Below the pieces are notes generated by a model. The model was not told the origin of the DNA. It saw only the letters and a list, made by a program, of their open reading frames with translations, and did not search any database. The position numbers were made by a program, and so were the translations under genes. From Macrostomum lignano (Eukaryota), in the NCBI GenBank assembly GCA_002269645.1, contig NIVC01003776.1, positions 13,391 to 77,390 of the forward strand: 64,000 nt of DNA, written 5' to 3'. Each line of letters opens with the position of its first letter. Positions within the stretch are counted from its first letter, which is position 1. Shown here piece after piece: positions 4,101-37,700 of this stretch.

Positions 4101-5253
4101 AGACTTCGTTGGGCAGCTGCTCAACGCCATCTTCGTCATCAACTAAACGCAATTGTTCAAAAATTTTGCGCATTTCTTGCAGTTTCTTTTTAGGCACAGA
4201 GTGCACATTGCGTTGGGCTAATTGGACAACATCGAATTTCCAATACGTATTCGGTTCAGTTACTATGCTTAGATAATTATGAGTAGCGGCCAGAGGTAAA
4301 TATGATACAAACTCGCTCGTTTTAACATTTGTATTGTCGATAATGACAATGGGCTTGCGATCCAACATGCAACTGCTTACTAAAATTGGTAGTAGGTGCA
4401 CAATAACTTCATGTAATTGGCTGGCTTTTATAGTAAAAAACAGGTTGAAATACCTCGAAACTACTACTGGTCATCTGATGATTCGGTTAGATACTCATTG
4501 CTCATTGAACTGGATACTACTGCAATACCTTGTACCGAAATGTCACGGTACAAGTCGCTAAAAAGTTGTCAAAGAGTCATCTAAGAGTTCAATTTAAGGT
4601 GTTTTGTTGTCTGCGACTCCACTCTATTTAGTCTACTTAAGTCAGTAGAAAGTTGAGCACTAGCAGAACAATTCTTGGACGACTTTTTGGCGGCCCTAGA
4701 GTCGCTAGAGTCAATGGCGAGTTGTTTGCAATGACTCTTTAGCGATTCTGGTCACGTTAACATTTTGAATGGGATGCTTATTGAACTGGATACTACTTAT
4801 TGCTTAATACAAGTGAGCATATGCTCACATCAATCTATACTTAAAAATAGATAAATTAGAAACTTTTGAAAAATAAGTTGCTTACCTTTATTTCTACATT
4901 GAACATGAGCATTTGAGATTAATGTTGGTTTGTAGTCATACTCTCCTGTTGGACTATAGAAATAATCATCTGCACTACATATGCAACATGCATTGTTGCC
5001 AAATTCAGCCAAAATAGATCTAAAATTAAATTATTATACAATTATATTAATCAAATAGAAATCAATGTCAGTGTGTTAACTAATGCAAAAAAATATAAAT
5101 CTATTTTAAACTTTCTTACTTTGCAAGTGTTGATTTTCCACTACCAGGCAAGCCTCTCAAGATAATAAGTAGGTTGTAATTCTGTCCAAGATACAATTCA
5201 ATGATAGGTAATATTGGATGTCTGAATTTTTCTTGCTGCCCTTTTGATTCCAT
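1140..5253 (-). CDS. N4BP2: NEDD4-binding protein 2 / NONU-1-like Smr endonuclease (P-loop kinase, 2 CUE, DUF1771, Smr), ~755 aa
   Basis: Phase-consistent GT-AG exons 5253-5120, 5019-4886, 4379-3982, 3133-2531, 2138-1140 (2268 nt). Motifs: Walker A LIILRGLPGSGKSTLA; SADDYF; IIDNTN...EPNTYWKFDVVQLAQRNVHSVP; CUE-like LASIFPDFDAEVL and LFRAFPGLSED; Smr LDLHGMNASEA...VITGHGKHS. Additional 5' exons cannot be excluded. Confidence 0.88.
2240..2460. repeat. Degenerate ~38-bp intronic tandem repeat (caccaggtgacaccagacacaacagtcacaaagcacatt)
   Basis: About 5 imperfect copies in intron 4 of the N4BP2-like gene. Confidence 0.7.
3215..3797. repeat. 24-bp palindrome-rich minisatellite (gatcatatgcatgatcatgtcttt), ~24 copies
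   Basis: Direct reading; lies in intron 3 of the N4BP2-like gene and explains the HMHDHVFD/MIKDMIMH repeat ORFs. Confidence 0.95.
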
Positions 5254-13500: not shown

Positions 13501-16500
13501 TGTGAACCGCACACTAAGTGCATTAGTGATTGGGTATGAACCGCACACTCTGTGCCTTGGTGGTTGGGTGTGAACCGCACACTCAGTGCATTGGTGATTG
13601 GTGTGAACCGCACACTCAGTGCATTGGTGATTGGGTGTGAACTCTTAATGATTTTTAGAAAGAGAAGAATAATTTTTCAACTGGTTTTGCGCTCTTTGAT
13701 TCAATCTTCGTGAGCAAAGCATCATGAAATTAGACGAAACAAATTGTGTAATTATATTTAGAGATTAAAAACACACGTATTTAAACAGGCAACAAAATGC
13801 AGCCCTGGTTAGCAGACTTGGCTACCTGGTTAATCAAGAAGACGATGCCACTGCAGCATTGGTGACTCAGCGATTCAACTTCATCCGAGCTCTGGAGTCC
13901 GGCCGCCAACTTGCCAGAGACATTGGCGGCTCAGATCCGGAACGAATGTCGCCTGGTCGCATTGCGGATCGACTTGCGTCGGAATTTGGCGTCGTTAGCA
14001 ACGGTCCAGTTGTCATGGAGATTGAAGAATCAATTAAGCCGGAGAAATATCCGTTAATGGCGGCTGTAGACAGAGGCAGCGTTGAGAGGCACCGTGGAAA
14101 GGTGGTACACCTCACCTATGAGGGCGAGCTGAATAGTCTGGTAAATTATTAATTACAATACAATCTTTTCATAGCAACAAAAATTTATGCTGTCTTATAA
14201 GTTTGGCTGTTAAATCTGCTTTCATACTTGCGTTGCAGTGGGAGCTGATATGATAAGTCAGCTTCTACCCTCTCTCGGTCAGCTTCTACCCTCTCCCAGT
14301 CAGCTTCTACCCTCTCTCGGTCAGCTTCTACCCTCTCCCAGTCAGCTTCTACCCTCACTCGGTCAGCTTCTACCCTCTCCCAGTCAGCTTCTACCCTCTC
14401 CCAGTCAGCTTCTACCCTCTCCCACTCAGCTTCTACCCTCTCCCAGTCAGCTTCTACCCTCTCCCATTCAGCTTCTACCCTCACTCGGTCAGCTTCTACC
14501 CTCTCCCATTCAGCTTCTACCCTCTCCCACTCAGCTTCTACCCTCTCCCAGTCAGATTCTACCCTCTCCCATTCAGCTTCTACCCTCACTCGGTCAGCTT
14601 CTACCCTCTCCCAGTCAGCTTCTACCCTCTCTCGGTCAGCTTCTACCCTCTCCCAGTCAGCTTCTACCCTCTCTCGGTCAGCTTCTACCCTCTCCCAGTC
14701 AGCTTCTACCCTCACTCGGTCAGCTTCTACCCTCTCCCAGTCAGCTTCTACCCTCTCCCAGTCAGCTTCTACCCTCTCCCACTCAGATTCTACCCTCTCC
14801 CATTCAGCTTCTACCCTCTCCCAGTCAGCTTCTACCCTCTCCCAGTCAGCTTCTACCCTCTCCCAGTCAGCTTCTACCCTCTCCCACTCAGCTTCTACCC
14901 TATCTCTGTCCGTCAGAAATGATTCGAAAGCAGCTCCCTGCTCCTCGCAACCATCCCACAGGCCGATGCCGCTGACTGCTCGCACGTGACACTCCTTCTA
15001 GCTGGCAAAGGCGTCACGTTCGATACTGGTGGACTGAGCCTAAAAACCGGTGGCAGCATGGTCGGCATGCACCGGGACAAGTGTGGTGCAGCAGCGGTTG
15101 CCGGCTTGTTCAGCCTGCTTGCCCAGCTGCGTCCGCCAAATCTGACGGCTCGCTGCAGCCTCGACCTGGTGCGAAACTCCATCGGGTCAGGGAGCTACTC
15201 GCCCGACGAGGTCATCGTCAGCCGGGCCGGTCGTCGAGTTCGCGTGGTGAACACCGACGCCGAAGGCAGAATGATTCTAGCTGATCTGCTGTGTCTGCAG
15301 CGTGAGCGAGCGTTGGAGCTTGCGGAACCGAGCAGAGCCAGGCTGTTTACCGTGGCGACCCTCACTGGCCACGCTGTGCTAGCCTACGGCCAGGGATATT
15401 CCATAGCGATGGACAATGGGCCGGCAAGAAGGCTCGGAGTGGCCGCAAAGTTACAAGCTGCTGGCGATCTAATTGCCGATCCGTTTGAGGTGGAAATGCA
15501 AAGTCAATTTTTTATTCGTTAATTTTTTCTATTAGAGAAACTGCTCGCTGATTTGTTAAGAAGATAACTGATCGCTGATTGGTTAAGAAGAGAACTGATC
15601 GCTGATTGGTTAAGAAGAGAACTGATCGCTGATTGGTTAAGAAGAGAACTGATCGCTGATTGGTTAAGAAGAGAACTGATCGCTGATTGATTGAGAAGAG
15701 AACTGATCGCTGATTGGTTGAGAAGAGAACTGATCGCTGATTGGTTGAGAGGAAAAATGATCGCTAATTGGCTGACAACAGAGCTATATTCGACTACTTT
15801 ATGAACCCTCGCTATTTAGATTTCCACTGTCAGACGCGAAGACTGGGACTTTGTTCGGTCATCAGGTCCATACGAGGAGCTACTGCAGTGCAATCCGCAA
15901 CCCAGTGCAGCCACCCGCGTGGCCATCAATTTCCGGCCGCATTCTTTGCCGCAGCTTCCGGTTTAGATAAGGTACAGATATTGATTAGCGTAATAACTGA
16001 ATTGCTTCGACAGTATTGTAGTTATATAGTTGCAAAATCTTGAATTATAATTTGAATGTATATATGAAGCTACGGTCGGAATTCCAGTACTTCGTGTACT
16101 CGCTTGACCGTACGCTTAAGCGAGACGTTTTTAAATTGGGTAATTGACGTAAGTGGGCGTATATCAGATGTGTTTATTGTTAAACTTAGAAATTGGTAAT
16201 AAATACCTCGTGTACTTTGGTTGCAAGTGTGGCAAATATTAATATATATTATATTACGTGCAGTCGTGGTCCTGCCGTTCAAGCTATGGTTTTATTATAA
16301 TTATGCCTAGTGGATTTAACTGGTTTGATTTAGATAGTGGCTGCCTCCAGGTCCCTGATTTTCTCTAATTCTAGTACTTAGCGATCAAAGAATAAAAGAA
16401 GGAAACCAAAAATTTATTTACTAAAAGGATATAAAACCGGTAGCAGTCTTACTGTACCTAGTATTCCCCGACTTTATCCCCCGATGTTACCTCTTATTCT

Positions 16501-18185: not shown

Positions 18186-18779
18186 TTAATTGTTATTATT
18201 TAATTTCTTTTTTGTTATTATTTTATCTATTGCCGCTAACCATTTTATACTCCACCAAATAATAAATCGTGGGCCCGTTATATAAAGCCTTTGCGTCGCG
18301 GTATCCTTAAGTTAATTTTAACTTACGTTGGCGCCGTGTCGTACCGGTAAATTTGCGTTCGGTGAAACTTTTGTAAGTCAGTTTGGCTTCTTAAGTTCCG
18401 CCGTTAATCTAGTAGGACAGGTCGGTCCTGTCGTAAGTCACTCTTTAGTTGCGAAAATGCACTTGTGCCGACTTCATTGAGTCAAAAACTTCGCATTTTA
18501 CTGTATATTTTGAGTAAATTTAAATATTGAAAAAATTAAACACTAGCGAAAATTGTTACGCTCGTAATTTAAAGTTTGAGTTGCAAGAAAAACCAATTGT
18601 GTTAAAGTCAGGCACGGTGGGAGTAGCTCCATGATACGCTGCCTTTCTGCTCGACCAGCAGCGGTGTCTTCAGCCAGTCAGTGGCTTCATTTTCAGCAGT
18701 CGCTTCCATGGCTAGCGGCTGATGTTCAGGTGGAAGTGGAATGGCTCTGCAGGCTACGGCTAAATTGTGGAGCACGTAG

Positions 18780-19145
18780 CATGCAACAATGATGTTGTAC
18801 ACCTGCAACAATGATGTTGCACACATGCAACAATGATGTTGCACACATGCAACAATGATGTTGCACACATGCAACAATGATGTTAAGTTGTACACCTGCA
18901 ACAATGATGTTGCACACCTGCAATTCAATGATGTTAAGTTGTACACCTGCAACAATGATGTTGCACACCTGCAATTCAATGATGTTAAGTTGTACACCTG
19001 CAACAATGATGTTGCACACCTGCAATTCAATGATGTTAAGTTGTACACCTGAAACAATGATGTTGCACACCTGCAACAATGATGTTGCACACCTGCAACA
19101 ATGATGTTAAGTTGTACACCTGCAACAATGATGTTGCACACATGC
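18780..19145. repeat. Composite minisatellite (gttgcacacctgcaacaatgat core with variants)
   Basis: Direct reading; produces the CNNDVAHL / ATMMLHT ORFs. Confidence 0.9.
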
Positions 19146-21462
19146 AACTGATGTGTTGTGCACTTTCACACAGTATCAGTGCACCTAGCCCTCCCAGCGG
19201 GTTGAGTCATCCCTGTTTGCACCCATGTTGTTTTCGTTTGTTATCACCCCCCTTCGCGTATTCCGCAGCCAGAGGCTTAAGTCGGTTTGTTTTTACTGGT
19301 ATGATTTTTCTCGCCCTGCGCTGCGATTGGTTGCGGCCAGCCCAGTAGTGTAGTGATTGGCTGACTCAAGGGGTTTGGTGCTGCCGGGCCCGCGCGGGGT
19401 GGTTGGCTGGGGGTTGGTGGGGTGGTGGGGTGGAGAGCGTGTACGTGGCCCTCCCCCTTCCACGGGCGTGCGCTATATTTAGCATCGCTCGCGGCGGGTT
19501 GGAGCGGTGTCCACCCTGCTCGGCTATCCCTCTCTCGAATTACTCCAAGTCACTTTAAGTCAATCAGCTCACTAGCTAGTCGGCTCCATATTGCCAAGGC
19601 TACGGCCATACGACTGTTTCAAACAAAATAAACGAAATGGCGTCATTAGAAACGCTCGGATCGTGAGGACCTGAGGCATTCTGACAATTTCAAAAAATGC
19701 ACGTGCTGACGCTGCTGCTGCTTGCTGATTGATTGGAAACGAAATGCAAATGGGTGCCCAATTTCCCGATCACTGCAATCGAGAGAGAGGGTCAAGTCTG
19801 TCTTTAAAAAATTGAAAAAAACAACACCTAGGTTATAAAAAGATAAAAATTAAATTGCCGGTTAAAGAGTTAGCTTTAGCGCAAAGTTTTTGTTGGACTA
19901 TACTAGATCTTATTCGACTATGAAGGCGCGGTCTATGAAGTAATAATATAGATAGTCACTTAAATTAGTATACACATGGAAGCACCAGGAGCAAACTATT
20001 AGGCTTGCCAGGCTTTTAACCTTTTTCTTCGGTTCACTCGAAGTAAAACCATTGGAAATCTCTAGCCTTTTTAGTTATTCGTCTATAGGAGCGAAGCAGT
20101 GCTTGCGAATTGCGAAGTTTCAAAGCAGTGTTTGCCGACAGCAGTAATTACAAAGCAAAACCGTTTTTGGGAAACGAGAAAAACAAGTGCTTACCTGAAA
20201 TAAAACGTGTTGTCGAGTGAGGAAAGGACCAAATTGCCCAGTGCCAGGGGGAGAAGGGGAGGGAGTCACCCAGGGAAATTAAGGCGCGCTGCATAGACAG
20301 ATCAGCGTGATGCATCAGTGAGTTGTGACAGACTGTGACCCCGCTGAAGGAAGCCGGGAAACCTCTCTCGTCATTGGTAGCCCCGTCTTGGAACAGTAGT
20401 CAGCAGTCTCTTGCGGCTGGGTCACTAAATTGCTCAAGGACCACTAGAAGTTACCGTTGTATCAGGACGCAACACTCGCAAATATTGCAGAATTAGTTGA
20501 AGGCAAGCTTGTTTACCTGTATGTAGCGATGCTTGCCTTAAAAAAACCATTCTACTCGACTGTTCTAAAAAAGCCTGCACCACATTTGGGCCTCAGAAGC
20601 TCCAGAATGGGTGTATTTACAATTTAGTAAGGCTTTAATCTGGTAAATCTACATATTTAAAGTATTTATGCCATTATATACAACCTTGCAACTCGTTTAA
20701 AAGTTGCTACGCTTTTATGTAGTCCTACTGCTACTAAATAGTTCAACAACGCATGAAAAATTTTTCAGATGGGCTTCTAATTAATTTACTAACAATGAAA
20801 AGTAGTTTAACCAATAATTCCATAAGCTTCAGCTGTCTTGACAAAGTTATGGGCCTCAACCCTAGTATGAAATACTGCGTACTGCCTTTAATTTACTGTA
20901 CGCCCGCCGCTTCTACATCTACTTCTACAAAAAAACAAAATTTTGAACAACCTGGCCAAAAAATTATCTTTCCAAGTGCATCCAGTCCGGAGTTTTTATG
21001 AGTATTTAAAGTTTAGCTGCAATGCAAACAAGCGGGCCTTCAAATAATTTTGCAATATTTGCCAGTGTTGCATCCTGATACAACGGTAACTTCTAGCGGT
21101 CCTTGGGGTTAAAATGCCGGCAAGGCGGTGCTAAAAGTCCTTTCTCATCAGAATCCTATATAGTCTATGGCCAGTCGGGGTGCCAACAGCCTCATTGAAT
21201 TCCCGCGAATCCAAATCGTCTATGGCCAGAGCCAGCTGACTCAGATGTACAGTTGCGTCTGTGACTGAGCCGAGCAACTCGGTCCCTTTTATACTACTGT
21301 TCCCAAGCCCAAAAATCTCTCAGAATTTCTGATTTCGTTGAGCTGGATTTGCCCTTTTAAAAAAACTTGACCACGCAGCACTAGGAGAAACAAGAAGCAT
21401 TTCTTAACAAGCTTAATAAAAGGTTGCGGGGATCAGCTGACCTTATCTGCCTCGACTTGAGC

Positions 21463-22854
21463 ATGTTACGAACGGTTCTGCTTCTGTTCTGCATGAGCGC
21501 AGCCATCTACGGCGCTCTGAGCTGCTCTTCCTCAAAGAAATGTGAGTAGCTTTTGTTGCTTTTGATTTGCGCTTTAGCTTGTGCGCATGCCCAGCTGCAT
21601 TCAGGATAATCCTGCCACTTTTCAGCTGAGCCTGATGCAGCTCCGGAAACCCAGGAAGACGCGAAAGAGGAGAGCGATTTAGGAAGTCCTGGTGAGATCC
21701 CAGACTAAAAGTTAAATAACAAATTTCTTACTTCAGTAGAGTAAAAAAATATTACTCCATTCCGTGACTGTCTAACAAATGAATTAACTTGCTAATTCCT
21801 GTCTTGACTGCTTCCACTTTACTCAGCATGTCAGAACAGTTCCCTCAGCATGTCAGAACAGTTCCCTCAGCATGTCAGAACAGTTCCCTCAGCATGTCAG
21901 AACAGTTCCCTCAGCATATCATAACAGTTCCCTCAGCATGTCAGCAGCATTCAGGATATACCTGCCACTTTTCAGCTCAGTCGGCTGCAGCTCCGGTAGT
22001 CAAGAAGGATCCACCGAAAGACGAGAGCACTTCCGAAAATCCTGGTAGGACGCCAGATTTAGTGTTCAATTGCAAATTTCTTGCTTCGGTAGAGTCATTA
22101 AGCTGGTATATAAACTGTCTCTATCAAACCATTTCAATTGTCTTCATTTCATTATTTACCCCACTTTGAAACAGATGCATTTTCCTCAGCATGTCAGAAC
22201 AGTTTCCTCAGCATGTCAGAACAGTTCCCTCAGCATGTCAGAACAGTTCCCTCAGCATGTCAGAACAGTTCCCTCAGCATGTCAGAACAGTTCCCTCAGC
22301 ATGTCAGAACAGTTCCCTCAGCATGTCAGAACAGTTCCCTCAGCATGTCAGAACAGTTCCCTCAGCATGTCAGAACAGTTTCCTCAGCATGTCACAACAG
22401 TTCCCTCAGCATGTCAGAACTTGTCATGTCATTTCTTACTTCAGTAGAGTAACTTCACCCTTGTCTGTGATCTGTCAATATCAAATCAATTTATCTCTTT
22501 TTCCTGCCTTACTGATCCCTGCAGTTTTAGCGAGATGCGTATCATCTCCTGCGCAATATCCCACATCTGTGTTCAACAATTCAATTCAAATTTACATACT
22601 GCAGATCACAATAGCAACTCATTTCAAGCACCTTCCGAGGCCAATGCGGCATTGCATATTACGGAAGAAAGGAGCACTCCGAGATCTCAAGGTGAGACAT
22701 CAGCTGCAAAGTTGACTTTTTAGACTAGCAATTATCCCTTACTTCTGTGACCTTCACTTGATAAACATTTAGATCATTGAGCTGGTTATCTGTCTGTTCA
22801 GTATGAGAAAGTTTCAGTTCCATTGTAGCCCTTTGTACTTTTACTTTCGCGATT

Positions 22855-22937
<83 letters not shown>

Positions 22938-25900
22938 TAGAGCTAATGTAATTCCCCAGCCGTCTACAGTTCCCCAGCTGTCTTCAATTCCCCAGCTGTC
23001 TACAATTCCCCAGCTGTCTACAATTCCCCAGCTGTCTACAATTCCCCAGCTGTCTACAATTCCCCAGCTGTCTACAATTCCCCAGCCGTCTACAGTTCCC
23101 CAGCTGTCTTCAATTCCCCAGCTGTCTACAATTCCCCAGCTGTCTACAATTCCCCAGCTGTCTACAATTCCCCAGCTGTCTACAATTCCCCAGCTGTCTA
23201 CAATTCCCCAGCTTTCTACAATTCCCTAGCTGTCTATAATTCCCTCAGCATGTCAGAACAGTTCCCTCAGCATGTCAGAACAGTTCCCTCAGCATGTCAG
23301 AAGAGTTCCCTCTGCATGTCAGAACAGTTCCCTCAGCATGTCAGAACAGTTCCCTCTGCATGTCAGAACAGTTCCCTCAGCATGTCAGAACAGTTCCCTC
23401 AGCATGTCAGAAAAGTTCCCTCAGCATGTCAGAAAAGTTCCCTCTGCATGTCAGAACAGTTCCCTCAGCATGTCAGAACAGTTCCCTCAGCATGTCAGAA
23501 AAGTTCCCTCTGCATGTCAGAACAGTTCCCTCAGCATGTCAGAACAATTCCCTCAGCATGTCAGAACAGTTTCCTCAGCATGTCAGAACAGTTCCCTCAG
23601 CATGTCAGAACAGTTCCCTCAGTATGTCAGAACAATTCCCTCAGCATGTCAGAACAGTTCCCTCAGCATGTCAGAACAGTTCCCTCTGCATGTCAGAACA
23701 GTTTCCTCTGCATGTCAGAACGGCTCCCTCAGCATGTCAGAACGGCTCCCTCAGCATGTCAGAACGGCTCCCTTAACATGTCTGCTGCCTTCAGGAAAAT
23801 CTTTCCACTTTTCAGCTGAGCCTGATGAAGCGCTGTCAGCCAAGGAAAATCCTCTGAAAGACAAAGACGTTTCGAAAAAGCCCGGTAAGACGCCAGATTT
23901 AAAGACTCCCTGTGCATGTCAGAACAGTTCAATTCAGCATGTCAGAGCAGTTCCCTCTGCATGTCAGAACAGTTCAATTCAGCATGTCAGAACAATTCCC
24001 TCTGCATGTCAGAACAGTTCAATTCAGCATGTCAGAACAGTTCCCTCTGCATGTCAGAACAGTTCAATTCAGCATGTCAGAACAGCTCCCTCTGCATGTC
24101 AGCTGCATTCAGGATATACCTGCCACTTTTCAGCTAAGTCGGCTGCAGCTCCGGTTATTAAGAAGGATCCACCGAAAGACGAGAGCACTTCCAAAAATCC
24201 CGGTAGGACGCCAGATTTAGTGTTCAATTGCAAATTTCTTGCTTCGGTAGAGTCATTAAGCTGGTATATAAACTGTCTCTATTAAATCATTTCAATTGTC
24301 TTCATGTCATAAATTATCCCACTTTGAAACAGATGCATTTTCCTTAGCATGTCAAGACATTTCCTTGTCCATGTCATGACAGTTTTGCATTAGCAGATCT
24401 TAGAATTAATTGTTCGCATGCACCCTGTAACTGATGCAAATCGCTATCATCAAACTCTGCTCAGTTTTGGTTTAATTGTCCCCAACTATTTCAGTCCAAT
24501 CTTTCAATGGTATTGGCTGCTACCTCACAACGAATAAAGTGAATAATGAAGTGAAACTGGAACTAAAGCAAAATATTAAAATGTCGCACCGCGTTTGCGC
24601 TCTTGAGTGTGCCAGGAAAAGTCCCTTAAAGAGATACAAATACTTCGGCCTCGCCAATGGAGAAAACTGCCTGTGTGCATCGGAACTGCCTAGGAACGCA
24701 ATCAAAGTCGATAACCCTGAAGTACATTGTTCGTATCGCTGCCCAGGAAATCACCTGCAATCGTGCGGTGGCGAGAATGCAGCAGCGTATTTCAGCGTCA
24801 GCACAACACTGTCTTCTATGAGAAAAGGTAATTAGATTGATTGACACAGAGCTAAGGCTGCTTATATTAGTGATGTTCTCAAGTAAAGTCCAATCACAAC
24901 TTTACCATTCCAGATAAATTCGAGCAGGGAGCGAAGGTCTATCCGGTTATTCCAGGTGAATTAAACTTGAAGCTTGTCAGTCGCATAATCTGTCTCATTA
25001 CAATTAACTATTATAATCTTATGCGGATCTCATCCGCATGCACTTGTGCTCACTTGTTATTCATTTTCATTTTTAGCTTCAGATTCTCTGAAATGCTACG
25101 AAAATCGTCGTAAATTGACAAAGGTGTTGCAAAGCGATGATGAGATGTCGCACCTTGTTTGCGCCTCCGAGTGTGTTAGGCGTGATCTCTACGGGAAAAA
25201 ATTCAAATATTTCGCCATCACCGATTCCGACACTTGCTTCTGTGCATCGACATTACCCACTTCAACGGAGAAAACAAAAAATACCTATTGTTCGTATCGG
25301 TGCCCAGGAAATCACAATCAGTCATGCGGGGCAGACCACAAGATAGCGTATTTCAACCTGAGCTCAACAACTGTTCCTCCAGAAAAAGGCAAGATTTTTG
25401 TCATATTACTGCCTGTGCATGAGCTGCTTCTGTTTCGAATGGAAACTGCTTTTCACAAACTACCAAAAGTTCCAAAGACGCTCTTCATATCCAGCTGTCT
25501 ACAATTCCCCAGCTGTCTACAGTTCCCCAGCTGTCTACAGTTCCCCAACTGTCTCGATTCCCCAGCTGTCTACCATTCCCTTGCTGTCTACAATTCCCCA
25601 GCTGTCTACAATTCCCCAGCTGTCTCGATTCCCCAGCTGTCTACAATTCCCCTGCTGTCTACAGTTCCCCAGCTGTCTACAGTTCCCCAACTGTCTACAA
25701 TTCCCCAGCTGTCTACAGTTCCCCAGCTGTCTACCATTCCCCAACTGTCTACCATTCCCCAACTGTCTACCATTCCCCAGCTGTCTACAATTCCCCAACT
25801 GTCTACCATTCCCCAGCTGTCTACAATTCCCCAGCTGTCTACAATTCCCCAGCTGTCTACAATTCCCCAGCTGTCTACAATTCCCCAGCTGTCTACAATT

Positions 25901-28900
25901 CCCCAGCTGTCTACCATTCCCCTGCTGTCTACAATTCCCCAGCTGTCTACAATTCCCCAGCTGTCTACCATTCACCAGCCGAACTTTCCATCTATCTTCC
26001 CAGCTGCAGCCGAGTTGCATTTTAAATCCTATCCGTCTATCAGTTTTCTCTCACTGATCTCTATCTGTAATTTTTTGCCCGCTTTGCCGTCTCTTGTCTT
26101 CTCTGTGGTGCATATCTCATTGCTTTTATTTGCTCCAGGATTAATTTGCCTGCTCTAATTTTCTATTATTCAGATAAATACGAGCAGGGAATGATGATAC
26201 TTCCTGCGTTCACACTGGGTAAGTTACGATCTGAGTTACGTATTTCGGCGGTTTGAGCTGCTCTTACTTAAATTAATTTGTTTTAACCATTTCAGGTAAC
26301 TTCCCTTTAGCCGGGTGCCTTTCTTTGCATCCTGGTTATATGATAAAAACTGTGCTGAACAAAAAAGTGATGACATATAGAGATTGCGCTCAAGAGTGTG
26401 TCAGAAAGGATTTCTACGAGACTTACAAATACTTTGCCATTCAGAATATTAGGAAATGCTTGTGTGCAAAAAAAAATACCTACGTCTGGGCATGGCGTTT
26501 CTAAAGTAGATGATAAACTGTGTAAAAGTCATTGTCCTATAGGCTCAAACGAGTATTGCGGAAGTCAAGGGCTTACGGCGTTTTTCAAGCTAACCCTACG
26601 AAAGCCAGGCAAGTATTCGGTGGCATCGCCGCCTTTCATGATAATAATTTTGCCCAATCCAACTGCAGCACATTACTTAATTTAATAATTAAGCATTTAC
26701 TTAACTATCTGGTATCCATGCAGTAAATGCACCAGCTAATTCTCCCACGTGTCTACAATTCCCCAGTTGTCTACTCCTCCTCAGCTGAATACGATTCCCC
26801 AACTGTCTACAATTCCCCACTTGAGTACAATTCCCCAGTTAACTACAATTCCCTAGCTGTCTACAATTCCCCAGCTGACTACAATTCCCCAGCTAACTAC
26901 AATTCCCCAGCTAACTACAATTCCCCAGCTGACTACAATTCCCCTGCTAACTACAATTCCCCAGCTGACTACAATGTGGGCCAATTTCAATTACGAATTA
27001 TATACGACTGACTGCACATCAGAATATCAACTCATTTTGCACCCCTGTCCTATCCAGACTTATCCAGATTTGCAACTTCCGATATGGAATCTGCAGGTAA
27101 GACTTCAACTGCAGAGTTGATTTTAGACTTTTAAAACCATCAATTCATCATCTTTTTAATCAGTGTGTTTACTTGTCAGTTCAGCGTTTGACTTCTGCAG
27201 TTCCATTATGGCCCTTATATGTAGTTCTAATTTTAAAAAGTTGTAAGCGCAAGCTCTTAACGAATTTCGCTATTTTCCGCCGAGTACTGATCCACACTGC
27301 ATCGTCATTAGCTCAGAATATCAATTCACTTCAACCCCTCTGCCCCTCCAGGCGAGTCCAAAAGTGGTCTGCAAACTCCAGATCCGAGATCGCACAGCGT
27401 CACAGCAAATCCAAGTGAGCTCAGCTGCAGAGTTGTTTTTAACCTGGCTGCACTTTTCCCTCAGCATGTCAGAACAGTTCCCTCAGCATGTCAGAACAGT
27501 TCCCTCAGCATGTCAGAACAGTTCCCTCAGTAAGTCAGAACAGTTCCCTCAGCATGTCAGAACAGTTTCCTTAGCATATCAGAACAGTTCCCTCAGCATG
27601 CCACAACAATTCCCTCAGCATGTCAGAACAGTTCCCTCAGCATGCCAGAACAGTTCCCTCAGCAAGTCAGAACAGTTCTCTCAGCATGTCAGAACAGTTC
27701 CCTCAGCATGCCAGAACAGTTCCCTCAGCAAGTCAGAACAGTTCTCTCAGCATGTCAGAACAGTTCCCTCAGTATGTCAGAACAATTCCCTCAGCATGTC
27801 AGAAAAACTCCTATATTGATGTAATGCTTTTCATGCAACATTTGACCACTTTTCCCCAACGGTTGCAGGAGATCCCATAGGATGCTATTCAATATACCAA
27901 GGCTATCCGATGGCAAAGCTGGAACTAATCGAAAAAGAAAAAATGTCGCACCGCGTTTGCGCTTTCGAGTGTCGCAAGAAAAATGCCTTGAAGAAATTCA
28001 AATACTTTAGCCTCGCCTTCGGTGACAGCTGCCTGTGTGCATCGGAACTGCCCCACGACTCGTACAGGCTGAGTATCGAGAAAGATTGTTCGATCCGCTG
28101 CCCAGCAAGTCACATGGAGTCGTGCGGTGGAGAAAGTGGAGCGGCGTATTTTAGCCTGAGCACAATAACCAACTCGCCGAACATTGGTAAGCTGTTGGCA
28201 AATTCGATTGGAAACTGAGACTGCTGAAGGTCACTTGCCAATTCTTGATCTTCTTGCAATTTACCTTACGATTTCAGATAAATTCGAGCAGGGAGTGAAG
28301 GTCTATCCGGTTATTCCAGGTGAATTAAACTTGAAGCTTGTCAGTCGCATAATCTGTCTCATTACAATTAACTATTATAATCTTATGCGGATCTCATCCG
28401 CATGCACTTGTGCTCACTTGTTATTCATTTTCATTTTTAGCTTCAGATTCTCTGAAATGCTACGAAAATCGTCGTAAATTGACAAAGGTGTTGCAAAGCG
28501 ATGATGAGATGTCGCACCTTGTTTGCGCCTCCGAGTGTGTTAGGCGTGATCTCTACGGGAAAAAATTCAAATATTTCGCCATCACCGATTCCGACACTTG
28601 CTTCTGTGCATCGACATTACCCACTTCAACGGAGAAAACAAAAAATACCTTTTGTTCGTATCGGTGCCCAGGAAATCACAATCAGTCATGCGGGGCAGAC
28701 CACAAGATAGCGTATTTCAGCCTGAGCTCAACAACTGTTCCTCCAGAAAAAGGCAAGAATTTTGTCATATTACTGCCTGTGCATGAGCTGCTTCTGTTTC
28801 GAATGGAAACTGCTTTTCACAAACTACCAAAAGTTCCAAAGACGCTCTTCATATCCAGCTGTCTACAATTCCCCAGCTGTCTACAGTTCCCCAACTGTCT

Positions 28901-31810
28901 ACAGTTCCCCAGCTGTCTACAATTCCCCAGCTGTCTACAGTTCCCCAGCTGTCTACCATTCCCCAACTGTCTACAGTTCCCCAGCTGTCTGCCATTCCCC
29001 AACTGTCTACAGTTCCCCAGCTGTCTACCATTCCCCAGCTGTCTACAATTCCCCAGCTGTCTACAATTCCCCAGCTGTCTACAGTTCCCCCAGCTGTCTA
29101 CAATTCCCCAACTGTCTACAATTCCCCAGCTGTCTACAATTCCCCAGCTGTCTACAACTCCCCGGCAGTCTACCATTCCCCAACTGTCTACAGTTCCCCC
29201 AGCTGTCTACAATTCCCCAGCTGTCTACAATTCCCCAACTGTCTACAATTCCCCAGCTGTCTACAATTCCCCGGCAGTCTACCATTCCCCAACTGTCTAA
29301 AACTCCCCAGCTGTCTACAATTCCCCAACTGTCTACAATTCCCCAGCTGTCTACAATTCCCCAGCTGTCTACAATTCCCCAGCTGTCTACAGTTCCCCAG
29401 CTGTCTACAATTCCCCAGCTGTCTACAGCTCCCCCAGCTGTCTACAATTCCCCCAGCTGTCTACAATTTCCCTGCTGTCTACAATTCCCCAGCTGTCTAC
29501 AATTCCCCAGCTGTCTACAATTCCCCAGCTTTCTACAATTCCCCAGCTGTCTACAGTTCCCCAGCTGTCTACAACTCCCCAGCTGTCTACCCTTCCCCAA
29601 CTGTCTACAATTCCCCAGCTGTCTACAATTCCCCAGCTGTCTACAATTCCCCAGCTGTCTACCATTCCCCTGCTGTCTACAATTCCCCAGCTGTCTACCA
29701 TTCCCCTGCTGTCTACAATTCCCCAGCTGTCTACCATTCCCCAGCTGTCTACCATTCCCCTGCTGTCTACAATTCCCCGGCAGTCTACAATTCCCCAGCT
29801 GTCTACCATTCCCCTGCTGTCTACAATTCCCCAGCTGTCTACAATTCCCCAGCTGTCTACCATTCCCCTGCTGTCTACAATTCCCCAGCTGTCTACAATT
29901 CCCCAGCTGTCTACAATTCCCCAGCTGTCTACCATTCCCCAGCTGTCTACCATTCCCCTGCTGTCTACAATTCCCCAGCTGTCTACAATTCCCCAGCTGT
30001 CTACCATTCCCTTGCTGTCTACAATTCCCCAGCTGTCTACAATTCCCCAGCTGTCTCGATTCCCCAGCTGTCTACAATTCCCCTGCTGTCTACAGTTCCC
30101 CAGCTGTCTACAGTTCCCCAACTGTCTACAATTCCCCAGCTGTCTACAGTTCCCCAGCTGTCTACCATTCCCCAACTGTCTACCATTCCCCAACTGTCTA
30201 CCATTCCCCAGCTGTCTACAATTCCCCAACTGTCTACCATTCCCCAGCTGTCTACAATTCCCCAGCTGTCTACAATTCCCCAGCTGTCTACAATTCCCCA
30301 GCTGTCTACAATTCCCCAGCTGTCTACAATTCCCCAGCTGTCTACCATTCCCCTGCTGTCTACAATTCCCCAGCTGTCTACAATTCCCCAGCTGTCTACC
30401 ATTCACCAGCCGAACTTTCCATCTATCTTCCCAGCTGCAGCCGAGTTGCATTTTAAATCCTATCCGTCTATCAGTTTTCTCTCACTGATCTCTATCTGTA
30501 ATTTTTTGCCCGCTTTGCCGTCTCTTGTCTTCTCTGTGGTGCATATCTCATTGCTTTTATTTGCTCCAGGATTAATTTGCCTGCTCTAATTTTCTATTAT
30601 TCAGATAAATACGAGCAGGGAATGATGATACTTCCTGCGTTCACACTGGGTAAGTTACGATCTGAGTTACGTATTTCGGCGGTTTGAGCTGCTCTTACTT
30701 AAATTAATTTGTTTTAACCATTTCAGGTAACTTCCCTTTAGCCGGGTGCCTTTCTTTGCATCCTGGTTATATGATAAAAACTGTGCTGAACAAAAAAGTG
30801 ATGACATATAGAGATTGCGCTCAAGAGTGTGTCAGAAAGGATTTCTACGAGACTTACAAATACTTTGCCATTCAGAATATTAGGAAATGCTTGTGTGCAA
30901 AAAAAAATACCTACGTCTGGGCATGGCGTTTCTAAAGTAGATGATAAACTGTGTAAAAGTCATTGTCCTATAGGCTCAAACGAGTATTGCGGAAGTCAAG
31001 GGCTTACGGCGTTTTTCAAGCTAACCCTACGAAAGCCAGGCAAGTATTCGGTGGCATCGCCGCCTTTCATGATAATAATTTTGCCCAATCCAACTGCAGC
31101 ACATTACTTAATTTAATAATTAAGCATTTACTTAACTATCTGGTATCCATGCAGTAAATGCACCAGCTAATTCTCCCACGTGTCTACAATTCCCCAGTTG
31201 TCTACTCCTCCTCAGCTGAATACGATTCCCCAACTGTCTACAATTCCCCACTTGAGTACAATTCCCCAGTTAACTACAATTCCCTAGCTGTCTACAATTC
31301 CCCAGCTGACTACAATTCCCCAGCTGACTACAATTCCCCAGCTGTCTACAATTCCCCAGCTGTCTACAATTCCCTAATTGAGTAGAATTGAGTACAATGT
31401 CTACAATTCCCTAGCTGTCTACAATTCCCCACTTGAGTACAATTCCCAGCTGTCTACAATTCCCCCAGCTAACTACAATTCCCCCAGCTGTCTACAATTC
31501 CCCAGCTAACTACAATTCCCCCAGCTAACTACAATTCGCCCAGCTAACTACAATTCCCCAGTTAACTACAATTCCCCAGCTGACTACAATTCCCCCAGCT
31601 GTGTACAATTCCCTAATTGAGTAGAATTTCCCAGCTGACCACAATTGCCCAGCTGTCTACAGTTCCCCCAGATGTCTACAATTCCCCAGCTATCTACGAT
31701 GTCCCTAACAGTGCGCAAGTATGCACCCCACATTCCCTTGATGTCTACACTCATACTTAAACTGACTGTTAACATCCCATCGCCTTTCGTGACGAATTTC
31801 AGACAACTGA
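21463..31810 (+). CDS. Secreted multi-WSC-domain protein (signal peptide, acidic/Lys/Pro linker micro-exons, 6 WSC domains), ~870 aa if all exons are used
   Basis: Signal exon 21463-21541 (MLRTVLLLFCMSAAIYGALSC). Micro-exons 21626-21691, 21976-22044, 22605-22691, 23816-23884, 24134-24202, 24914-24955, 26174-26218, 27058-27096, 27352-27414, 28278-28319, 30605-30649. WSC exons 24495-24827, 25083-25388, 26296-26608, 27869-28186, 28447-28752, 30727-31039, each with the 8-Cys pattern (G)C..C..EC..YF(G/A/S)..C.C..C..(R/H)CP..CG. The last exon is uncertain (31803, D-N-stop). The A9 runs at 26468 and 30899 break the frame. Confidence 0.8.
21824..24100. repeat. 22-bp minisatellite family (cagttccctcagcatgtcagaa) in several WSC-gene introns
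   Basis: Arrays at ~21824-21945, 22183-22420, 23243-23775, 23910-24100, and again at 27457-27805; source of the MSEQFPQHVRTVPSACQ ORFs. Confidence 0.95.
22856..22931. repeat. (AG)n microsatellite
   Basis: Uninterrupted AG dinucleotide run of ~37 units. Confidence 0.97.
22946..31700. repeat. 18-bp minisatellite family (ttccccagctgtctacaa) in WSC-gene introns
   Basis: Separate arrays at ~22946-23242, 25490-25975, 26750-26975, 28855-30405, 31185-31700; translates as PQLSTI/SPAVYN/FPSCLQ. Confidence 0.95.
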
Positions 31811-32389
31811 CACAGCCGCTCCGAGGTTCAAGGGAACAGTCCGGTGCTGCACAGAATCAGTCGAGTAACCCATAGCGGACTGACAGTGTTTTATTTTGTA
31901 GCCATGCTTTTTAATTAACTACAAGGAGTTCTGTAAGCCAGCTAATATTTCAGTTCCTTATCTGTAGCCAGGGAATCGTTCCCAAACAGTCGCATGATAT
32001 TTATTATTGCTTATCTGAAAATTTCTGTCATTTTTGTTTGCAATCTGTCGTACACTTTACCCATAGCGCCAGTGATTTGACAGCGGAAGTCTGTATGTAC
32101 TTAGGAGCTAAAAGATTTAATTTATGCAGTGCGTTAAAACCCAGCTATTTGGCCTACCAATATTTAGTACTGTAGCTCCAGCCAATGGCCTCTTCAGAAC
32201 TCAAATTTCAAGCAAACAAGTATTTAAAAGCCCTTTTTCTTGCCTAGCTTAGTAGCCCTGTCGCTCTCTATTTTATATTTCATGCGGCATAATTAAAACC
32301 AATAAAATCTGCGAGCTCGTTCAACAGCTTCTCCAAGTAGTCCGTCTTACTGCCATGTCTGTTTAAATGCATTTCAGAAGCAATTGGTA

Positions 32390-32895
32390 GAGAACTGAAG
32401 ATGGAGACGGGAGGGTAGAGAACTGGAGATGGAGACGGGAGGGTAGAGAACTGGAGATGGAGACGGGAGGGTAGAGAACTCGAGATGGAGACGGGAGGGT
32501 AGAGAACTAGAGATGGAGACGGGAGGGTAGAGAACTGGAGATGGAGACGGGAGGGTAGAGAACTGGAGATGGAGACGGGAGGGTAGAGAACTGGAGATGG
32601 AGACGGGAGGGTAGAGAACTCGAGATGGAGACGGGAGGGTAGAGAACTAGAGATGGAGACGGGAGGGTAGAGAACTGGAGATGGAGACGGGAGGGTAGAG
32701 AACTCGAGATGGAGACGGGAGGGTAGAGAACTGGAGATGGAGACGGGAGGGTAGAGAACTGGAGATGGAGACGGGAGGGTAGAGAACTGGAGATGGAGAC
32801 GGGAGGGTAGAGAACTGGAGATGGAGACGGGAGGGTAGAGAACTGGAGATGGAGACGGGAGGGTAGAGAACTAGAGATGGAGACGGGAGGGTAGA
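32390..32895. repeat. 28-bp purine-rich minisatellite (atggagacgggagggtagagaactggag), ~18 copies
   Basis: Period 28 read directly (32401 vs 32429). Confidence 0.95.
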
Positions 32896-33495
32896 GGATG
32901 CTGAGTCGGGTCCGAGAGAAGGGGATTTAGGAAGGGCAATTACATCATCGCTGTCAGAGAAGTCCACCGACAAAAAAGCACCATCCGACATATGCAAGTG
33001 CGAATAGAAAATGGAAAAGCATTCCTGTCCGGGGCACGCTCAATACAATAGCTATAGTCGTATGATGCGAAGGTCAGGCGCGATGTTTGCAGCCGCGGCA
33101 TCCGCTGGACCATGGCGGACATTGCGTGCTCAGTTCAGCTGCATCATAAAGGCTCGACAGCTTACCGACTATGCGACAGATGCCGCTACCATCAAAGTCG
33201 ACAATTTGGCGGCGAATTCGACAGTATTTCGTATTTCCTGGGATTTGCAACTTGACAGCTAGCTACTAGGCCGGGATTAAGGTCGTTGCACTGAGTCAAC
33301 CCAGAGGGCTCATCTTTCCAAACTTTTGACACTGCAAACCCTTTTTTACGTCAACGTGTAACCGTGAGCCAGTCTACGTCGTGGACATCTCACATTGCAT
33401 GAAAAATGCTAGAAACACCCTGATGATTGTTTCATTTATTTTGATTATTTAGAGGTTAGGGGCTGTCAGGGACTACTCAATTGAGTAGTCCCTGA

Positions 33496-34738: not shown

Positions 34739-37700
34739 CTAAATATCGATACTTCGCCCCGATCCCGCTGCCCCGTTCCGGTCGAGTGTCATGGAAGCGT
34801 AGGCCCTGACTGAGTTGCCCAGACCGCTATCGAGCGTCGTGTCAGCTGGGGTGGCATTGCCGCATCCGCCAGCGCTGTACAACGGAATCCTGGGCAAGGT
34901 GGTGCAGTGCTGCTGCTGACGATAGCCGCCCGGATGTCCGCAGTGCTGATGATAGCCCGCCTGCTGGTTGCCATGGTGCAGGCAGGTTGGCGGACCCTTG
35001 CCGATAGCATCAATTGGCGTCTGCATCGGCGTGTCCTCGTCGTTGCCAGCGTTGGCGCCAGCCGATCCGCTCATTCGAAGGCGTCGCGCCGCCGACATGA
35101 TGATCCGTCTGCGATATACTACTATGATTAGGCCGCTCAGTAGGGCTAGCAGCACTAGCAGGATTAGAATGATGATGATTACTTGGCTAGTGCTGAGGCA
35201 CATGCTGTATTTGCACACCGCGTCGGCTGAAAGATTATTCACACACTATTGTAATGCTCAACACATGCAGTTCGAAGTTTAACTAACTACGAGCTACGCT
35301 AGGCAGTGTCTATCTAGTACACTCTGCGCCCAGGGGGTTGACCCTCAAAGTCTAAATTCCTGTGGTCTCCTACGGAATGGAAGCCCAGACCCAATCGTCA
35401 ACCAGTTCACGATCTGCAGTAGGCATTCTTACAGATTTCCGACCGCTTCGCTTGATGCTTTGCGATGACTACCAAACGGATTTCTTCGTCAAGTTCTCTG
35501 ACACCAAAGTCGGGACTGCGTTTGGTCATTTTTTCCGGTTTGCAAGCAGTTTTCTGGAATCGGAAGTATGCGTGCATGTACACATGAGTATAGGCTATAG
35601 AGTCACGGATATATATATATATATATATATATGAGTCAGCCGCCATGGATAACCCCAGGACGGAACCAAACCACAGGTAGAACCCACCGGATCGCAGAAA
35701 ATCGACTCCGATTCCTGGCAAATCCGAACAGTGCACGCAAAGTACACGGTCGGCAAAGAGCCGCCCAGACGAAAAGCTGGAAAACTGCCTGTCTGCTGCA
35801 GATGCAAACCTGTGCCCTGGCGGGGACTTTGAAAGCTCGCATTGAAACCGGACTTTGGTACTGCGGATCTGCGATGGATGTTGGTGAGGTAGTGTTTTTA
35901 GGCTTCATCATGATTGGTAGGATACCACACTTAAGGCGCTCCTATGTTGGCTGCATGCTATAAAAAGAAATGACGCAGGCCACCGACTAACCATTTCTAA
36001 ATCTGCTTAACTTGCAGTAAACTTATTTGATATTTAGCACAAGCTCTTTAAAAATATGAATCGATTACATGAGCATCGAGTCTAGAAGTCCAAAAAATGA
36101 AAAAAGTTAATTAGTAGCCCTGGGGCGTCGCCATAGACAAATCCAAGAATTCTGCATTACTAAATTCCTGCATTATTTTTAAAACTGGTGTTGCTAGCAC
36201 TCATTTTAGCGCCGCAGACACTCATTTTGGCGCCACAGGCACTCATTTTAGCGCCACAGGCACCTACTTCTGGCGACGCAGGCACTCATTTTAGCGCCGC
36301 AGACACACTCATTTTGGCGCTGCAGGCACTCATTTTAGCGCCGCAGACAGACATTCATTTTGGCGCTGCAGGCACTCATTTTAGCGCCGCAGGCACACAC
36401 TCATTTTGGCGCCGCAGGCACTCATTTTAGCGCCGCAGACAGACACTCATTTTGGCGACGCAGGCACTCATTTTAGCGCCGCAGACAGACACTCATTTTG
36501 GCGACGCAGGCACTCATTTTAGCGCCGCAGACAGACACTCATTTTAGCGCCGCAGACAGACACTCATTTTAGCGCCGCAGACACTCATTTTGGCGCCACA
36601 GGCACTCATTTTAGCGCCACAGGCACCTACTTCTGGCGACGCAGGCACTCATTTTAGCGCCGCAGACACACTCATTTTGGCGCTGCAGGCACTCATTTTA
36701 GCGCCGCAGACAGACATTCATTTTGGCGCTGCAGGCACTCATTTTAGCGCCGCAGGCACACACTCATTTTGGCGCCGCAGGCACTCATTTTAGCGCCGCA
36801 GACAGACACTCATTTTGGCGACGCAGGCACTCATTTTAGCGCCGCAGACAGACACTCATTTTAGCGTCGCAGACAGACACTCATTTTGGCGCCGCGACAC
36901 ATTTTGGCGCCGCAGGCACTCATTTTAGCTATATTTTGGTGCCCTGAAGTAAAATTATTGATTTTTACAACGGGTCACAAGGTGGGGTAAGGGTGACAAA
37001 GCATTGGCATGTCCCCCCCATAGCTTTTACTGGGGGGGGGGCATGTCCCCCTGTCCCCCCAGGTGGCGAAGCAACTGTTAATAGCTTTTCTGTTCGAATA
37101 TTTCTGTATTTTCAAGTTGATCAAATTAGGGTTTACTGATTTCGAGCTATCTGTTTAACCATTCCCAGAAAATGTTCGACATGAGCTACGGTTTATAACG
37201 GTGGATTTTTGATAAAAAATATAATTGCTACGCTGAACTATAAATTGCAGACAATGGGATTACGAGAGCAAATCTACAGGGAGGAAAATTCTACGACAAA
37301 AGTAAGTATAAATAAATATATACACTGCAGTCCTGTAGGTAGCATTGGGCATTTTTCTGGCAATTTCCGTTGGCAAATAGACCGCGGGGTACTGCCTCAG
37401 CCCGCTCCTGGGGTACCTTCGTATTCTCCCGCTGCCAGAGCCCAGTGCAGCGAGATGCAGGAGCCCTACAGCCCTATGCTCAGCCAGCCGCATATGCTCA
37501 AGTTTCACCAGGCCCGCTTGCATAGGAGCTATAAAAAAACTAGCAAATTTGAACGTATCTAATGTGGTATTTTGCTCCGCAATCGAGCGGAATAGCTCTT
37601 AATGGGGGAATAGAATTTTTTTAGTAAAAAGACTTGACAAAATTGCTACAAAGCAACCATTTGGTTAAGTAGGGATATAATATCATCCAGGAATCTAATT

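Follow-up and report, generated by a model that had tools for sequence, protein, structure and literature searches.

Mlig000913 of Macrostomum lignano, a multi-WSC gene probably built from duplicated phase-1 exon cassettes

Introduction

Phase-1 introns after signal peptides and around extracellular cysteine-rich modules are the textbook pattern of exon shuffling (Patthy's rule). In tropoelastin all internal exons split codons alike, the short exons are of two alternating types, and cassette splicing is documented. In human DMBT1 the SID spacers lie on separate phase-1 exons. Here we analysed a stretch of 64,000 nucleotides (nt) from the flatworm Macrostomum lignano (assembly GCA_002269645.1, contig NIVC01003776.1, positions 13,391 to 77,390 of the forward strand; "the window" below), which holds a copy of the gene Mlig000913 at window positions 21463-31810 on the + strand. 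We consider it likely, with a probability of roughly 0.65, that this copy is a lineage-specific secreted multi-WSC gene built by recombined phase-1 cassettes, whose variants differ chiefly by gene copy, allele or paralogue instead of arising by combinatorial splicing.

DMBT1 (salivary agglutinin/gp340) is a secreted multivalent binder in which 8-Cys single-exon SRCR domains alternate with SID spacers of 20-24 amino acids (aa), and its number of units, 8-13, is a germline polymorphism (PMC3100851). Micro-exon genes (MEGs) carry most of their coding region in very small symmetric exons of 6-81 bp, mostly about 15 bp, and splice variants of them are documented (PMC4350168; bioRxiv 10.1101/2023.06.21.545858); VAL-6 is an example of a domain gene of which one part is MEG-like (PMC4350168). 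In M. lignano itself, WSC-domain proteins are common among the prostate-limited seminal-fluid candidates, such as Mlig-pro46 and Mlig-pro5 (= RNA815_80.4) (PMC4490696, PMC6953679, PMC5977470 Table S1).

Results

Exon structure of the Mlig000913 copy

A splice model built by script divided the region 21463-31810 into 19 exons, namely a signal-peptide exon, 17 internal exons and a terminal exon with 8 coding nt. All 17 internal exons begin and finish in phase 1. As assembled, 15 of the 17 internal exon lengths are divisible by 3 (in order 66, 69, 87, 69, 69, 333, 42, 312, 45, 39, 63, 318, 42, 312 and 45 nt), and all 17 are once a run of nine adenines (A9) in each of the other two is taken as A8. 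Eleven internal exons are short (66, 69, 87, 69, 69, 42, 45, 39, 63, 42 and 45 nt) and six are long (312-333 nt). When one A per A9 run was dropped, an open frame of 873 aa was obtained which ends with D-N-stop at 31810. The exons are:

21463-21541 (+), exon 1: 79 nt with the start codon, ending in phase 1; codes for the putative signal peptide MLRTVLLLFCMSAAIYGALSCSSSKK; N-terminus the same in the GenBank proteins PAA50747.1 and PAA49845.1
21626-21691 (+), exon 2: acidic Pro-rich spacer EPDAAPETQEDAKEESDLGSP; 66 nt, phase 1-1; junctions in PAA50747.1 and PAA49845.1; belongs to family E2/3/5/6, with common intron flanks
21976-22044 (+), exon 3: Lys/Pro/Asp spacer; 69 nt, phase 1-1; 91% nt identity with exon 6; junctions in the GenBank proteins
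22605-22691 (+), exon 4: polar Ser/Thr/Asn-rich spacer; 87 nt, phase 1-1; junctions in the GenBank proteins
23816-23884 (+), exon 5: diverged copy of exon 2; 69 nt, phase 1-1; not in the DNA of the sister copy
24134-24202 (+), exon 6: copy of exon 3 (91% nt); 69 nt, phase 1-1; not in the DNA of the sister copy
24495-24827 (+), exon 7: WSC domain 1 (8 Cys); 333 nt; PF01822 E = 8.5e-15 alone
24914-24955 (+), exon 8: conserved linker (D)KFEQGAKVYPVIP; 42 nt; motif kept in the paralogous proteins P0003, P0004 and P0007
25077-25388 (+), exon 9: WSC domain 2; 312 nt; E = 3.8e-13; followed by GC donor AAG/GCAAGA, a junction used in PAA50747.1 and PAA49845.1
26174-26218 (+), exon 10: linker (D)KYEQGMMILPAFTL; 45 nt
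26296-26608 (+), exon 11: WSC domain 3; 313 nt; A9 run 26468-26476; followed by GC donor CAG/GCAAGT
27058-27096 (+), exon 12: spacer; 39 nt, phase 1-1 after A-run correction; junctions used in PAA50747.1
27352-27414 (+), exon 13: spacer; 63 nt; upstream intron sequence like that of exon 12
27869-28186 (+), exon 14: WSC domain 4; 318 nt; E = 5.8e-11
28278-28319 (+), exon 15: linker, copy of exon 8 (97.6% nt); 42 nt
28441-28752 (+), exon 16: WSC domain 5, copy of exon 9 (99.4% nt); 312 nt; followed by a GC donor
30605-30649 (+), exon 17: linker, identical to exon 10; 45 nt
30727-31039 (+), exon 18: WSC domain 6, identical to exon 11 including its A9 run (30899-30907); 313 nt; followed by a GC donor
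31803-31810 (+), last exon, coding part (..D N stop): the C-terminus ...LRKPDN matches PAA50747.1

This model confirms to the base what a first-pass annotation, made from the sequence by itself, had described: 17 symmetric phase-1 internal exons, 11 of them of 39-87 nt, with an A9 correction needed in two WSC exons (exons 11 and 18, 313 nt each). The statement that any subset of exons can be dropped in frame also holds as a possibility, since every internal exon is phase 1-1. The label "micro-exon" fits less well: the 11 short exons are real, but none is ≤36 nt and only five are ≤51 nt.

All introns end in a pyrimidine tract followed by (c/t)ag. Of the donors, 14 are GT and four are GC, the latter in good AG/GCAAG context after exons 9, 11, 16 and 18 (positions 25389, 26609, 28753 and 31040; AAG/GCAAGA or CAG/GCAAGT); 4/18 introns are thus GC-AG, each of them following a WSC exon. 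A CAG/GCGAGT donor is present at the same phase-1 position after four WSC exons of the 35%-identical paralogue Mlig000975 (approximate positions 38072, 38788, 39504 and 40220 of its locus, L003), so that the rare GC donor type is conserved within the Mlig000913 family.

The GenBank locus on NIVC01003776.1 (L002, GCA_002269645.1) is identical to window positions 11463-36504. There the window copy is annotated as BOX15_Mlig000913g3, and its protein PAA49845.1 (P0002, 459 aa) is 100% identical to our model up to a stop induced by the first A9 run. A sister copy on contig NIVC01003572.1 (L001), BOX15_Mlig000913g1, encodes the 826-aa protein PAA50747.1 (P0001) with the full six WSC domains; the record name of the gene is already that of a "WSC domain-containing" hypothetical protein. 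Both proteins use exactly the modelled junctions, PAA49845.1 as far as its stop. As the GenBank annotation stems from a genome-guided transcriptome assembled from StringTie, TACO and de novo transcripts (PMC5730564), and these RNA-guided models support the junctions, those of the four GC-AG introns among them, the splice junctions are not merely predicted.

The N-terminus has the n-, h- and c-region layout typical of a signal peptide, as judged by eye, and on inspection no transmembrane or glycosylphosphatidylinositol-like tail was visible in the Mlig000913 protein. The proposal that the locus is a genuine gene, coding for a six-WSC protein with a putative signal peptide, was borne out; the protein is predicted to be secreted. 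The first AATAAA 3' of the stop codon is at 32301, and shortly after it lies a 28-nt minisatellite of 18 copies (32386-32896).

WSC domains and their linkers

A search of the whole protein with the Pfam WSC profile (PF01822) gave six matches, one per long exon (E = 5.6e-63, 209.6 bits against a gathering cut-off of 27.8), and each of the six exons encodes 8 Cys, so that the assignment of one WSC domain to each of six exons stands. The four distinct domain types were scored alone: exons 7, 9, 11 and 14 reached 40.7-55.2 bits against the cut-off of 27.8, with exons 16 and 18 represented by their near-identical copies 9 and 11. The Pfam scan of the Mlig000913 protein found nothing but WSC above the cut-off. 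An alignment of 10 units from three genes contains eight invariant Cys columns. Foldseek searches with an AlphaFold2 model of a linker + WSC unit had, for the WSC part, Kremen-1 (5fws, E = 3.3e-5, TM 0.58) and yeast Wsc1 (7pz2) as top matches, and Kremen-1 was also matched by sequence profile (E = 1.9e-6). The domains are WSC domains of the Kremen/Wsc1 type with eight Cys, and on the strength of this family membership the protein would bind glycans with multivalent avidity.

A first, word-indexed protein search returned six matches, all of them M. lignano proteins, and an exhaustive profile search was needed to see the breadth of the family. With linker plus WSC as the query, 2580 proteins reached E ≤ 0.001. 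The possession of several WSC domains is in itself widespread, with examples in oysters, fungi and Diplonema; among the 2580 proteins, matches that start at the first profile positions, and so include the linker, come from M. lignano only and form a small subfamily.

The short exons had all been described as encoding charged Pro/Lys/Asp/Glu linkers. This is correct for exons 2, 3, 5 and 6, which are charged spacers of this composition; it does not hold for exons 4, 12 and 13, which encode polar spacers, nor for exons 8, 10, 15 and 17, which encode the conserved motif DK[FY][EK]QG..(Y)P..P. Four of the six WSC domains are thereby preceded by a conserved linker of 14-15 aa on its own short exon. 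Across paralogues that are 35-41% identical overall, conservation of the linker motif equals or exceeds that of the WSC core, which argues that the linker exons are constitutive parts of a linker + WSC unit. The AlphaFold2 model of this unit has a moderate pLDDT (the model's own confidence score) of 69.7, which falls to about 60 in the linker; a short strand is predicted within the linker, at a confidence too low to build on.

Duplication in the DNA and differences between copies

The 17 internal exons fall into about five duplication families: exons 2/3/5/6, exon 4, exons 12/13, exons 8/10/15/17 and the six WSC exons. Exons 2, 3, 5 and 6 share 65-91% nt identity and have nearly identical intron flanks, and exons 12 and 13 have upstream intron sequence in common. 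Other pairs are closer still, with nt identities of 97.6% for exons 8/15, 100% for 10/17, 99.4% for 9/16 and 100% for 11/18, which are parts of one tandem duplication. The duplicated blocks and the largest intronic arrays are:

24899-26943 (+): internal tandem duplication, first copy (exons 8-11 with their introns); blastn 99.2% over 1454 nt against the second copy
28263-31374 (+): internal tandem duplication, second copy (exons 15-18); about 1.07 kb longer, its 18-nt array being expanded
23240-23782 (+): largest array of a 22-nt intronic minisatellite, unit CTCAGCATGTCAGAACAGTTCC; other arrays at 21822-21944, 22184-22420, 23907-24102 (45-nt variant) and 27456-27804
28855-30410 (+): largest array of an 18-nt intronic minisatellite, unit CCAGCTGTCTACAATTCC, 86 copies; other arrays at 22950-23254, 25491-25979, 26753-26975 and 31169-31691

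The phase symmetry is beyond chance, yet not the outcome of 17 independent events: duplication of some five ancestral phase 1-1 cassettes accounts for it.

At ≤3 mismatches, the 22-nt and 18-nt units have 63 and 156 matches, all on the + strand within Mlig000913 introns, and the count outside these introns in the 64-kb window is 0. Both units include the acceptor-like sequence TTCCC(T)CAG, to which the 18-nt one adds a CAGCTG; intron 4 contains a (GA)42 tract at 22856-22942. The arrays are open in all three + frames, but were rejected as coding sequence, being absent from the RNA-guided coding sequence; open frames are uninformative here, as by our own arithmetic an 18-nt unit is expected to be free of stops about 40% of the time by chance.

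The sister copy provides a direct view of a cassette difference. Its flanks are 98.7-99.9% identical to the window, and exons 5 and 6 are not present in its DNA; the 22-nt array there continues unbroken into the unique sequence upstream of exon 7. The 46 residues of these exons which are wanting in PAA50747.1 thus reflect a genomic indel with breakpoints inside the 22-nt minisatellite, and skipping of exons 5 and 6 in the sister-copy transcript could be rejected.

The paralogue Mlig000975 (P0003, 35% identical) follows the same plan, with a 42-nt linker exon DKFKQGAKVYPVLP and a WSC exon repeated with a period of 716 nt. Its DNA (L003) and its 773-aa protein contain five linker + WSC units each. 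In Mlig013029g1 (P0007, locus L004), a near-identical copy with the same 716-nt period, the number is seven for both the DNA and the 1029-aa protein. The linker exons (42 nt) and WSC exons of Mlig000975 are at positions matching those in Mlig000913, with a donor after ...CAG/GCGAGT. In L003, the first linker exon is separated from the first WSC exon by an intron of about 30 kb of 23-nt and 18-nt minisatellites (7633-37733), versus one of about 120 nt in L004 (4633-4757); intron size is either extremely polymorphic here or was altered by the assembly.

These features are those of phase 1-1 shuffled module genes: each of the six WSC exons is flanked at its domain boundaries by two phase-1 introns; one Cys-rich extracellular domain is encoded per exon; the signal-peptide exon ends in phase 1; and the modules were multiplied in tandem in the DNA, in frame. 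Unlike in the familiar examples, the module is the less well-known WSC domain, and all domain exons but two are paired with a conserved linker exon of 42-45 nt.

The A9 runs and the state of the window copy

The first A9 run (26468-26476, exon 11) shifts the frame into a stop codon starting at 26502, where PAA49845.1 ends; the second is at 30899-30907 in exon 18. Both sites are A8 in the sister copy, which reads through all six WSC domains. The odds are roughly even between two possibilities: a genuine frameshift, present in the two copies of one WSC exon and leading to a truncated 459-aa product, and a homopolymer assembly error. A real frameshift, to which we would give slightly less than an even chance, would make the window copy a decaying or neo-truncated duplicate with the signal peptide, the spacers, two WSC domains and a partial third, whereas the intact function would reside in the sister copies. 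The DV1 assembly is redundant and includes duplicated chromosomes, so that a spare copy can decay (PMC5730564). In agreement with this possibility, both exon copies are A9 on this contig and both are A8 in the sister copy, GenBank annotates the truncated 459-aa product, UniRef100 lists the intact 826-aa sequence with three entries (n=3) against a single one (n=1) for the truncated version, and the run-bearing repeats are 100% identical, which is consistent with gene conversion having spread a single change. However, a one-base difference in a homopolymer is a typical residual error of long-read assemblies, the same change at two sites 4.4 kb apart would also be expected from mis-polishing of two identical repeats, and beyond the frameshift the reading frame has stayed entirely open, with a sequence that does not differ from that of the intact copy.

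Expression in the testis region

In the transcriptome Maclig_37v3, Mlig000913.g10 (1380 nt, = 459 aa + stop) has cumulative counts of 12/673/412/401 for head/testis/ovary/whole worm, and Mlig000913.g8 (2481 nt, = 826 aa + stop) has 36/830/522/421, the counts being reads in cumulative body fragments A-D (Brand et al. 2020; PMC7336406 supplements). Both entries were classed as "+,0,0" = Testes by positional RNA-seq and as "germline_FACS" in the neoblast/germline set, and the paralogue Mlig000975.g4 (2322 nt, = 773 aa + stop) was likewise classed as "Testes" (PMC7336406). The tables of that study record no in situ hybridization (ISH) pattern for Mlig000913 (PMC7336406), and a literature search for "Mlig000913" gave no full-text match. 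We infer that the protein is produced in the testis region, is secreted and multivalent and probably binds glycans, with a possible role in male reproduction as a component of sperm or of testis secretion. The suggestion of a role in immunity, mucus or adhesion is not what this expression indicates, given that both Mlig000913 entries are "Testis" and "germline_FACS".

The protein has in common with the prostate WSC candidates of M. lignano the species, the predicted secretion of a WSC-domain protein and the tie to male reproduction. It differs from them in its "Testis" class, as opposed to "Tail"/prostate, and it is absent from the 18 seminal-fluid candidates that carry Mlig ids and could be mapped. 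A more far-reaching proposal, which we regard as rather unlikely, is that Mlig000913 and its paralogues form a Macrostomum-specific testis lectin family with fast change of cassette number, in which the minisatellite introns act as recombination substrates and some skipping occurs at the weak GC donors; the products would be individual- or lineage-specific glycan binders secreted by sperm or testis under sexual selection.

One complete coding sequence per locus

The first-pass annotation had seen in the locus a combinatorial generator of isoforms, in the manner of schistosome micro-exon genes, in which the cassettes would be skipped in many combinations at the RNA level to yield a repertoire of secreted WSC isoforms from a single gene. 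The exon structure would permit this: 17/17 internal exons are phase 1-1, which keeps all combinations in frame, eleven exons are short (39-87 nt), four donors are of the weaker GC type, a GC donor is kept after the WSC exons of the paralogue, and M. lignano belongs to the flatworms, from which micro-exon genes are known (PMC4350168). Evidence on splicing came from the deposited short-read-based annotation and not from raw reads; in this annotation, alternative transcripts were discarded only where their coding sequences were identical (PMC5730564). For each of four family loci (the window copy up to its stop, the sister copy, Mlig000975 with five units and Mlig013029g1 with seven), one protein is deposited, and its RNA-guided coding sequence holds every cassette present in the DNA. 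Near-identical shorter isoforms were not found among the deposited proteins: no skipped-exon variant is deposited, and the 90% identity clusters of PAA50747.1 and PAA49845.1 have one member each. The only apparent skip, that of exons 5 and 6, is a genomic deletion; the linker exons encode a motif more conserved than the WSC domains; and the phase 1-1 symmetry follows from the duplication of about five ancestral cassettes. The idea of combinatorial splicing is unsupported by these data although not refuted, and we consider it improbable, slightly more so than the testis lectin proposal.

The comparison with schistosome MEGs points in the same direction. Mlig000913 resembles them in that it comes from a flatworm, has short symmetric exons that could be skipped in frame and encodes a putative signal peptide, but it lacks their defining feature: exons of 39-87 nt make up only 636/2624 coding nt (24%), none is ≤36 nt, and no variant is on record. 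Its classification as a MEG was rejected on exon size and coding fraction. The Mlig000913 cassettes can be dropped in frame and include two alternating kinds of short exon, as in tropoelastin, an unrelated protein, for which, in contrast to Mlig000913, cassette splicing is documented.

It might be suspected that the assembly created the repeated blocks of exons and the differences in cassettes, and that the true gene is simpler: over half of the genome consists of repeats, simple and tandem ones making up 15%, and 180-312 Mb of its sequence is duplicated (PMC5730564), while the block in question is duplicated at 99% identity with minisatellites at its bounds. This is very improbable, however, because the same six-WSC layout is found on two separately assembled contigs, the block copies differ at specific coding positions (between exons 9 and 16, two substitutions in the window, and in the sister copy substitutions together with a 3-nt indel), and the RNA-guided 826-aa coding sequence runs through all six domains.

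Other features of the window

Outside Mlig000913, the following features were observed:

1140-4401 (-): open reading frame pieces that match the domains Smr (E = 3.3e-13) and, weakly, AAA_33 and CUE, suggesting an N4BP2-like gene
3149-3932: coding-looking minisatellite between the N4BP2-like pieces
14986-15522 (+): exon-sized open reading frame with an M17 leucyl aminopeptidase catalytic domain (E = 3.9e-43), adjoining a GC-rich minisatellite at 14185-14985
34739-36504+ (-): downstream neighbour annotated with a zona pellucida domain (PF00100), 557 aa, extending beyond the end of L002; the last open reading frame has a transmembrane-like stretch
45030-45692: 53-nt repeat
46785-50794: 4-kb array of about 324 copies of the 13-nt unit CACACAGAGATCA
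61427-62728 (-): unbroken 433-aa open reading frame with a signal-like N-terminus and Cys-loop receptor ligand-binding (E = 1.4e-53) and membrane (2.5e-13) domains, apparently an intronless ligand-gated ion channel gene
5991-6530, 11900-12400, 18608-19147, 37807-38523, 53475-54294 and 56167-56685: further minisatellites with open frames

The extreme AT skew (up to 0.68) is due to the 13-nt unit array at 46785-50794.

Discussion

In the reading that we prefer, cassettes lying between phase-1 introns, i.e. spacer exons on the one hand and units of linker exon plus WSC exon on the other, would be duplicated and deleted in the DNA, probably because introns recombine unequally through their minisatellites and other near-identical sequences. 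The symmetry of each cassette would keep the products in frame. The uniform phase 1 would then be a historical trace of how the gene was built, by a remodelling that may still be ongoing. By analogy of architecture, DMBT1 is a closer counterpart than the micro-exon genes: it, too, alternates domains with short spacers and varies in unit number, in the Mlig000913 family between near-identical gene copies. It differs in having SRCR instead of WSC domains and a CUB or ZP tail, which Mlig000913 does not have, and in acting in mucosal defence, as opposed to the testis/germline class of Mlig000913.

Several points weigh against this reading. StringTie and TACO models favour the dominant isoform, so that minor skipped forms would be missed in an annotation of this kind. 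Short exons and GC donors, both of which occur in Mlig000913, are elsewhere associated with regulated splicing. Recombination via minisatellites is deduced from the position of one indel and from the repeat structure rather than from observed events. Secretion and glycan binding are likewise predictions from the domain family and the sequence. As for expression, the GenBank genes g1 and g3 were equated with g8 and g10 of the v3 transcriptome by exact length of the coding sequence, not by sequence; reads multi-map between copies that are 99% identical, so that expression of the window copy itself is not proven; and the "Testis" class comes from RNA-seq of body regions and not from ISH.

The gene was already annotated, its architecture is a known one, and no new class of mechanism is implied. 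The locus also calls for caution in that symmetry of exon phase is not evidence of combinatorial splicing. If the cassette-recombination reading is right, Mlig000913 would be a clean example of how uniform intron phase allows gain and loss of whole domains in frame, with intermediates visible between copies that are 99% identical. Should the testis lectin proposal be true, the family would represent, in a free-living flatworm, a DNA-level counterpart of the RNA-level micro-exon genes of schistosomes. For M. lignano, the gene adds a testis-region subfamily to the WSC proteins that are already prominent among the prostate and seminal-fluid candidates, and it offers a defined target for RNA interference and ISH in a species used for studies of sexual selection.

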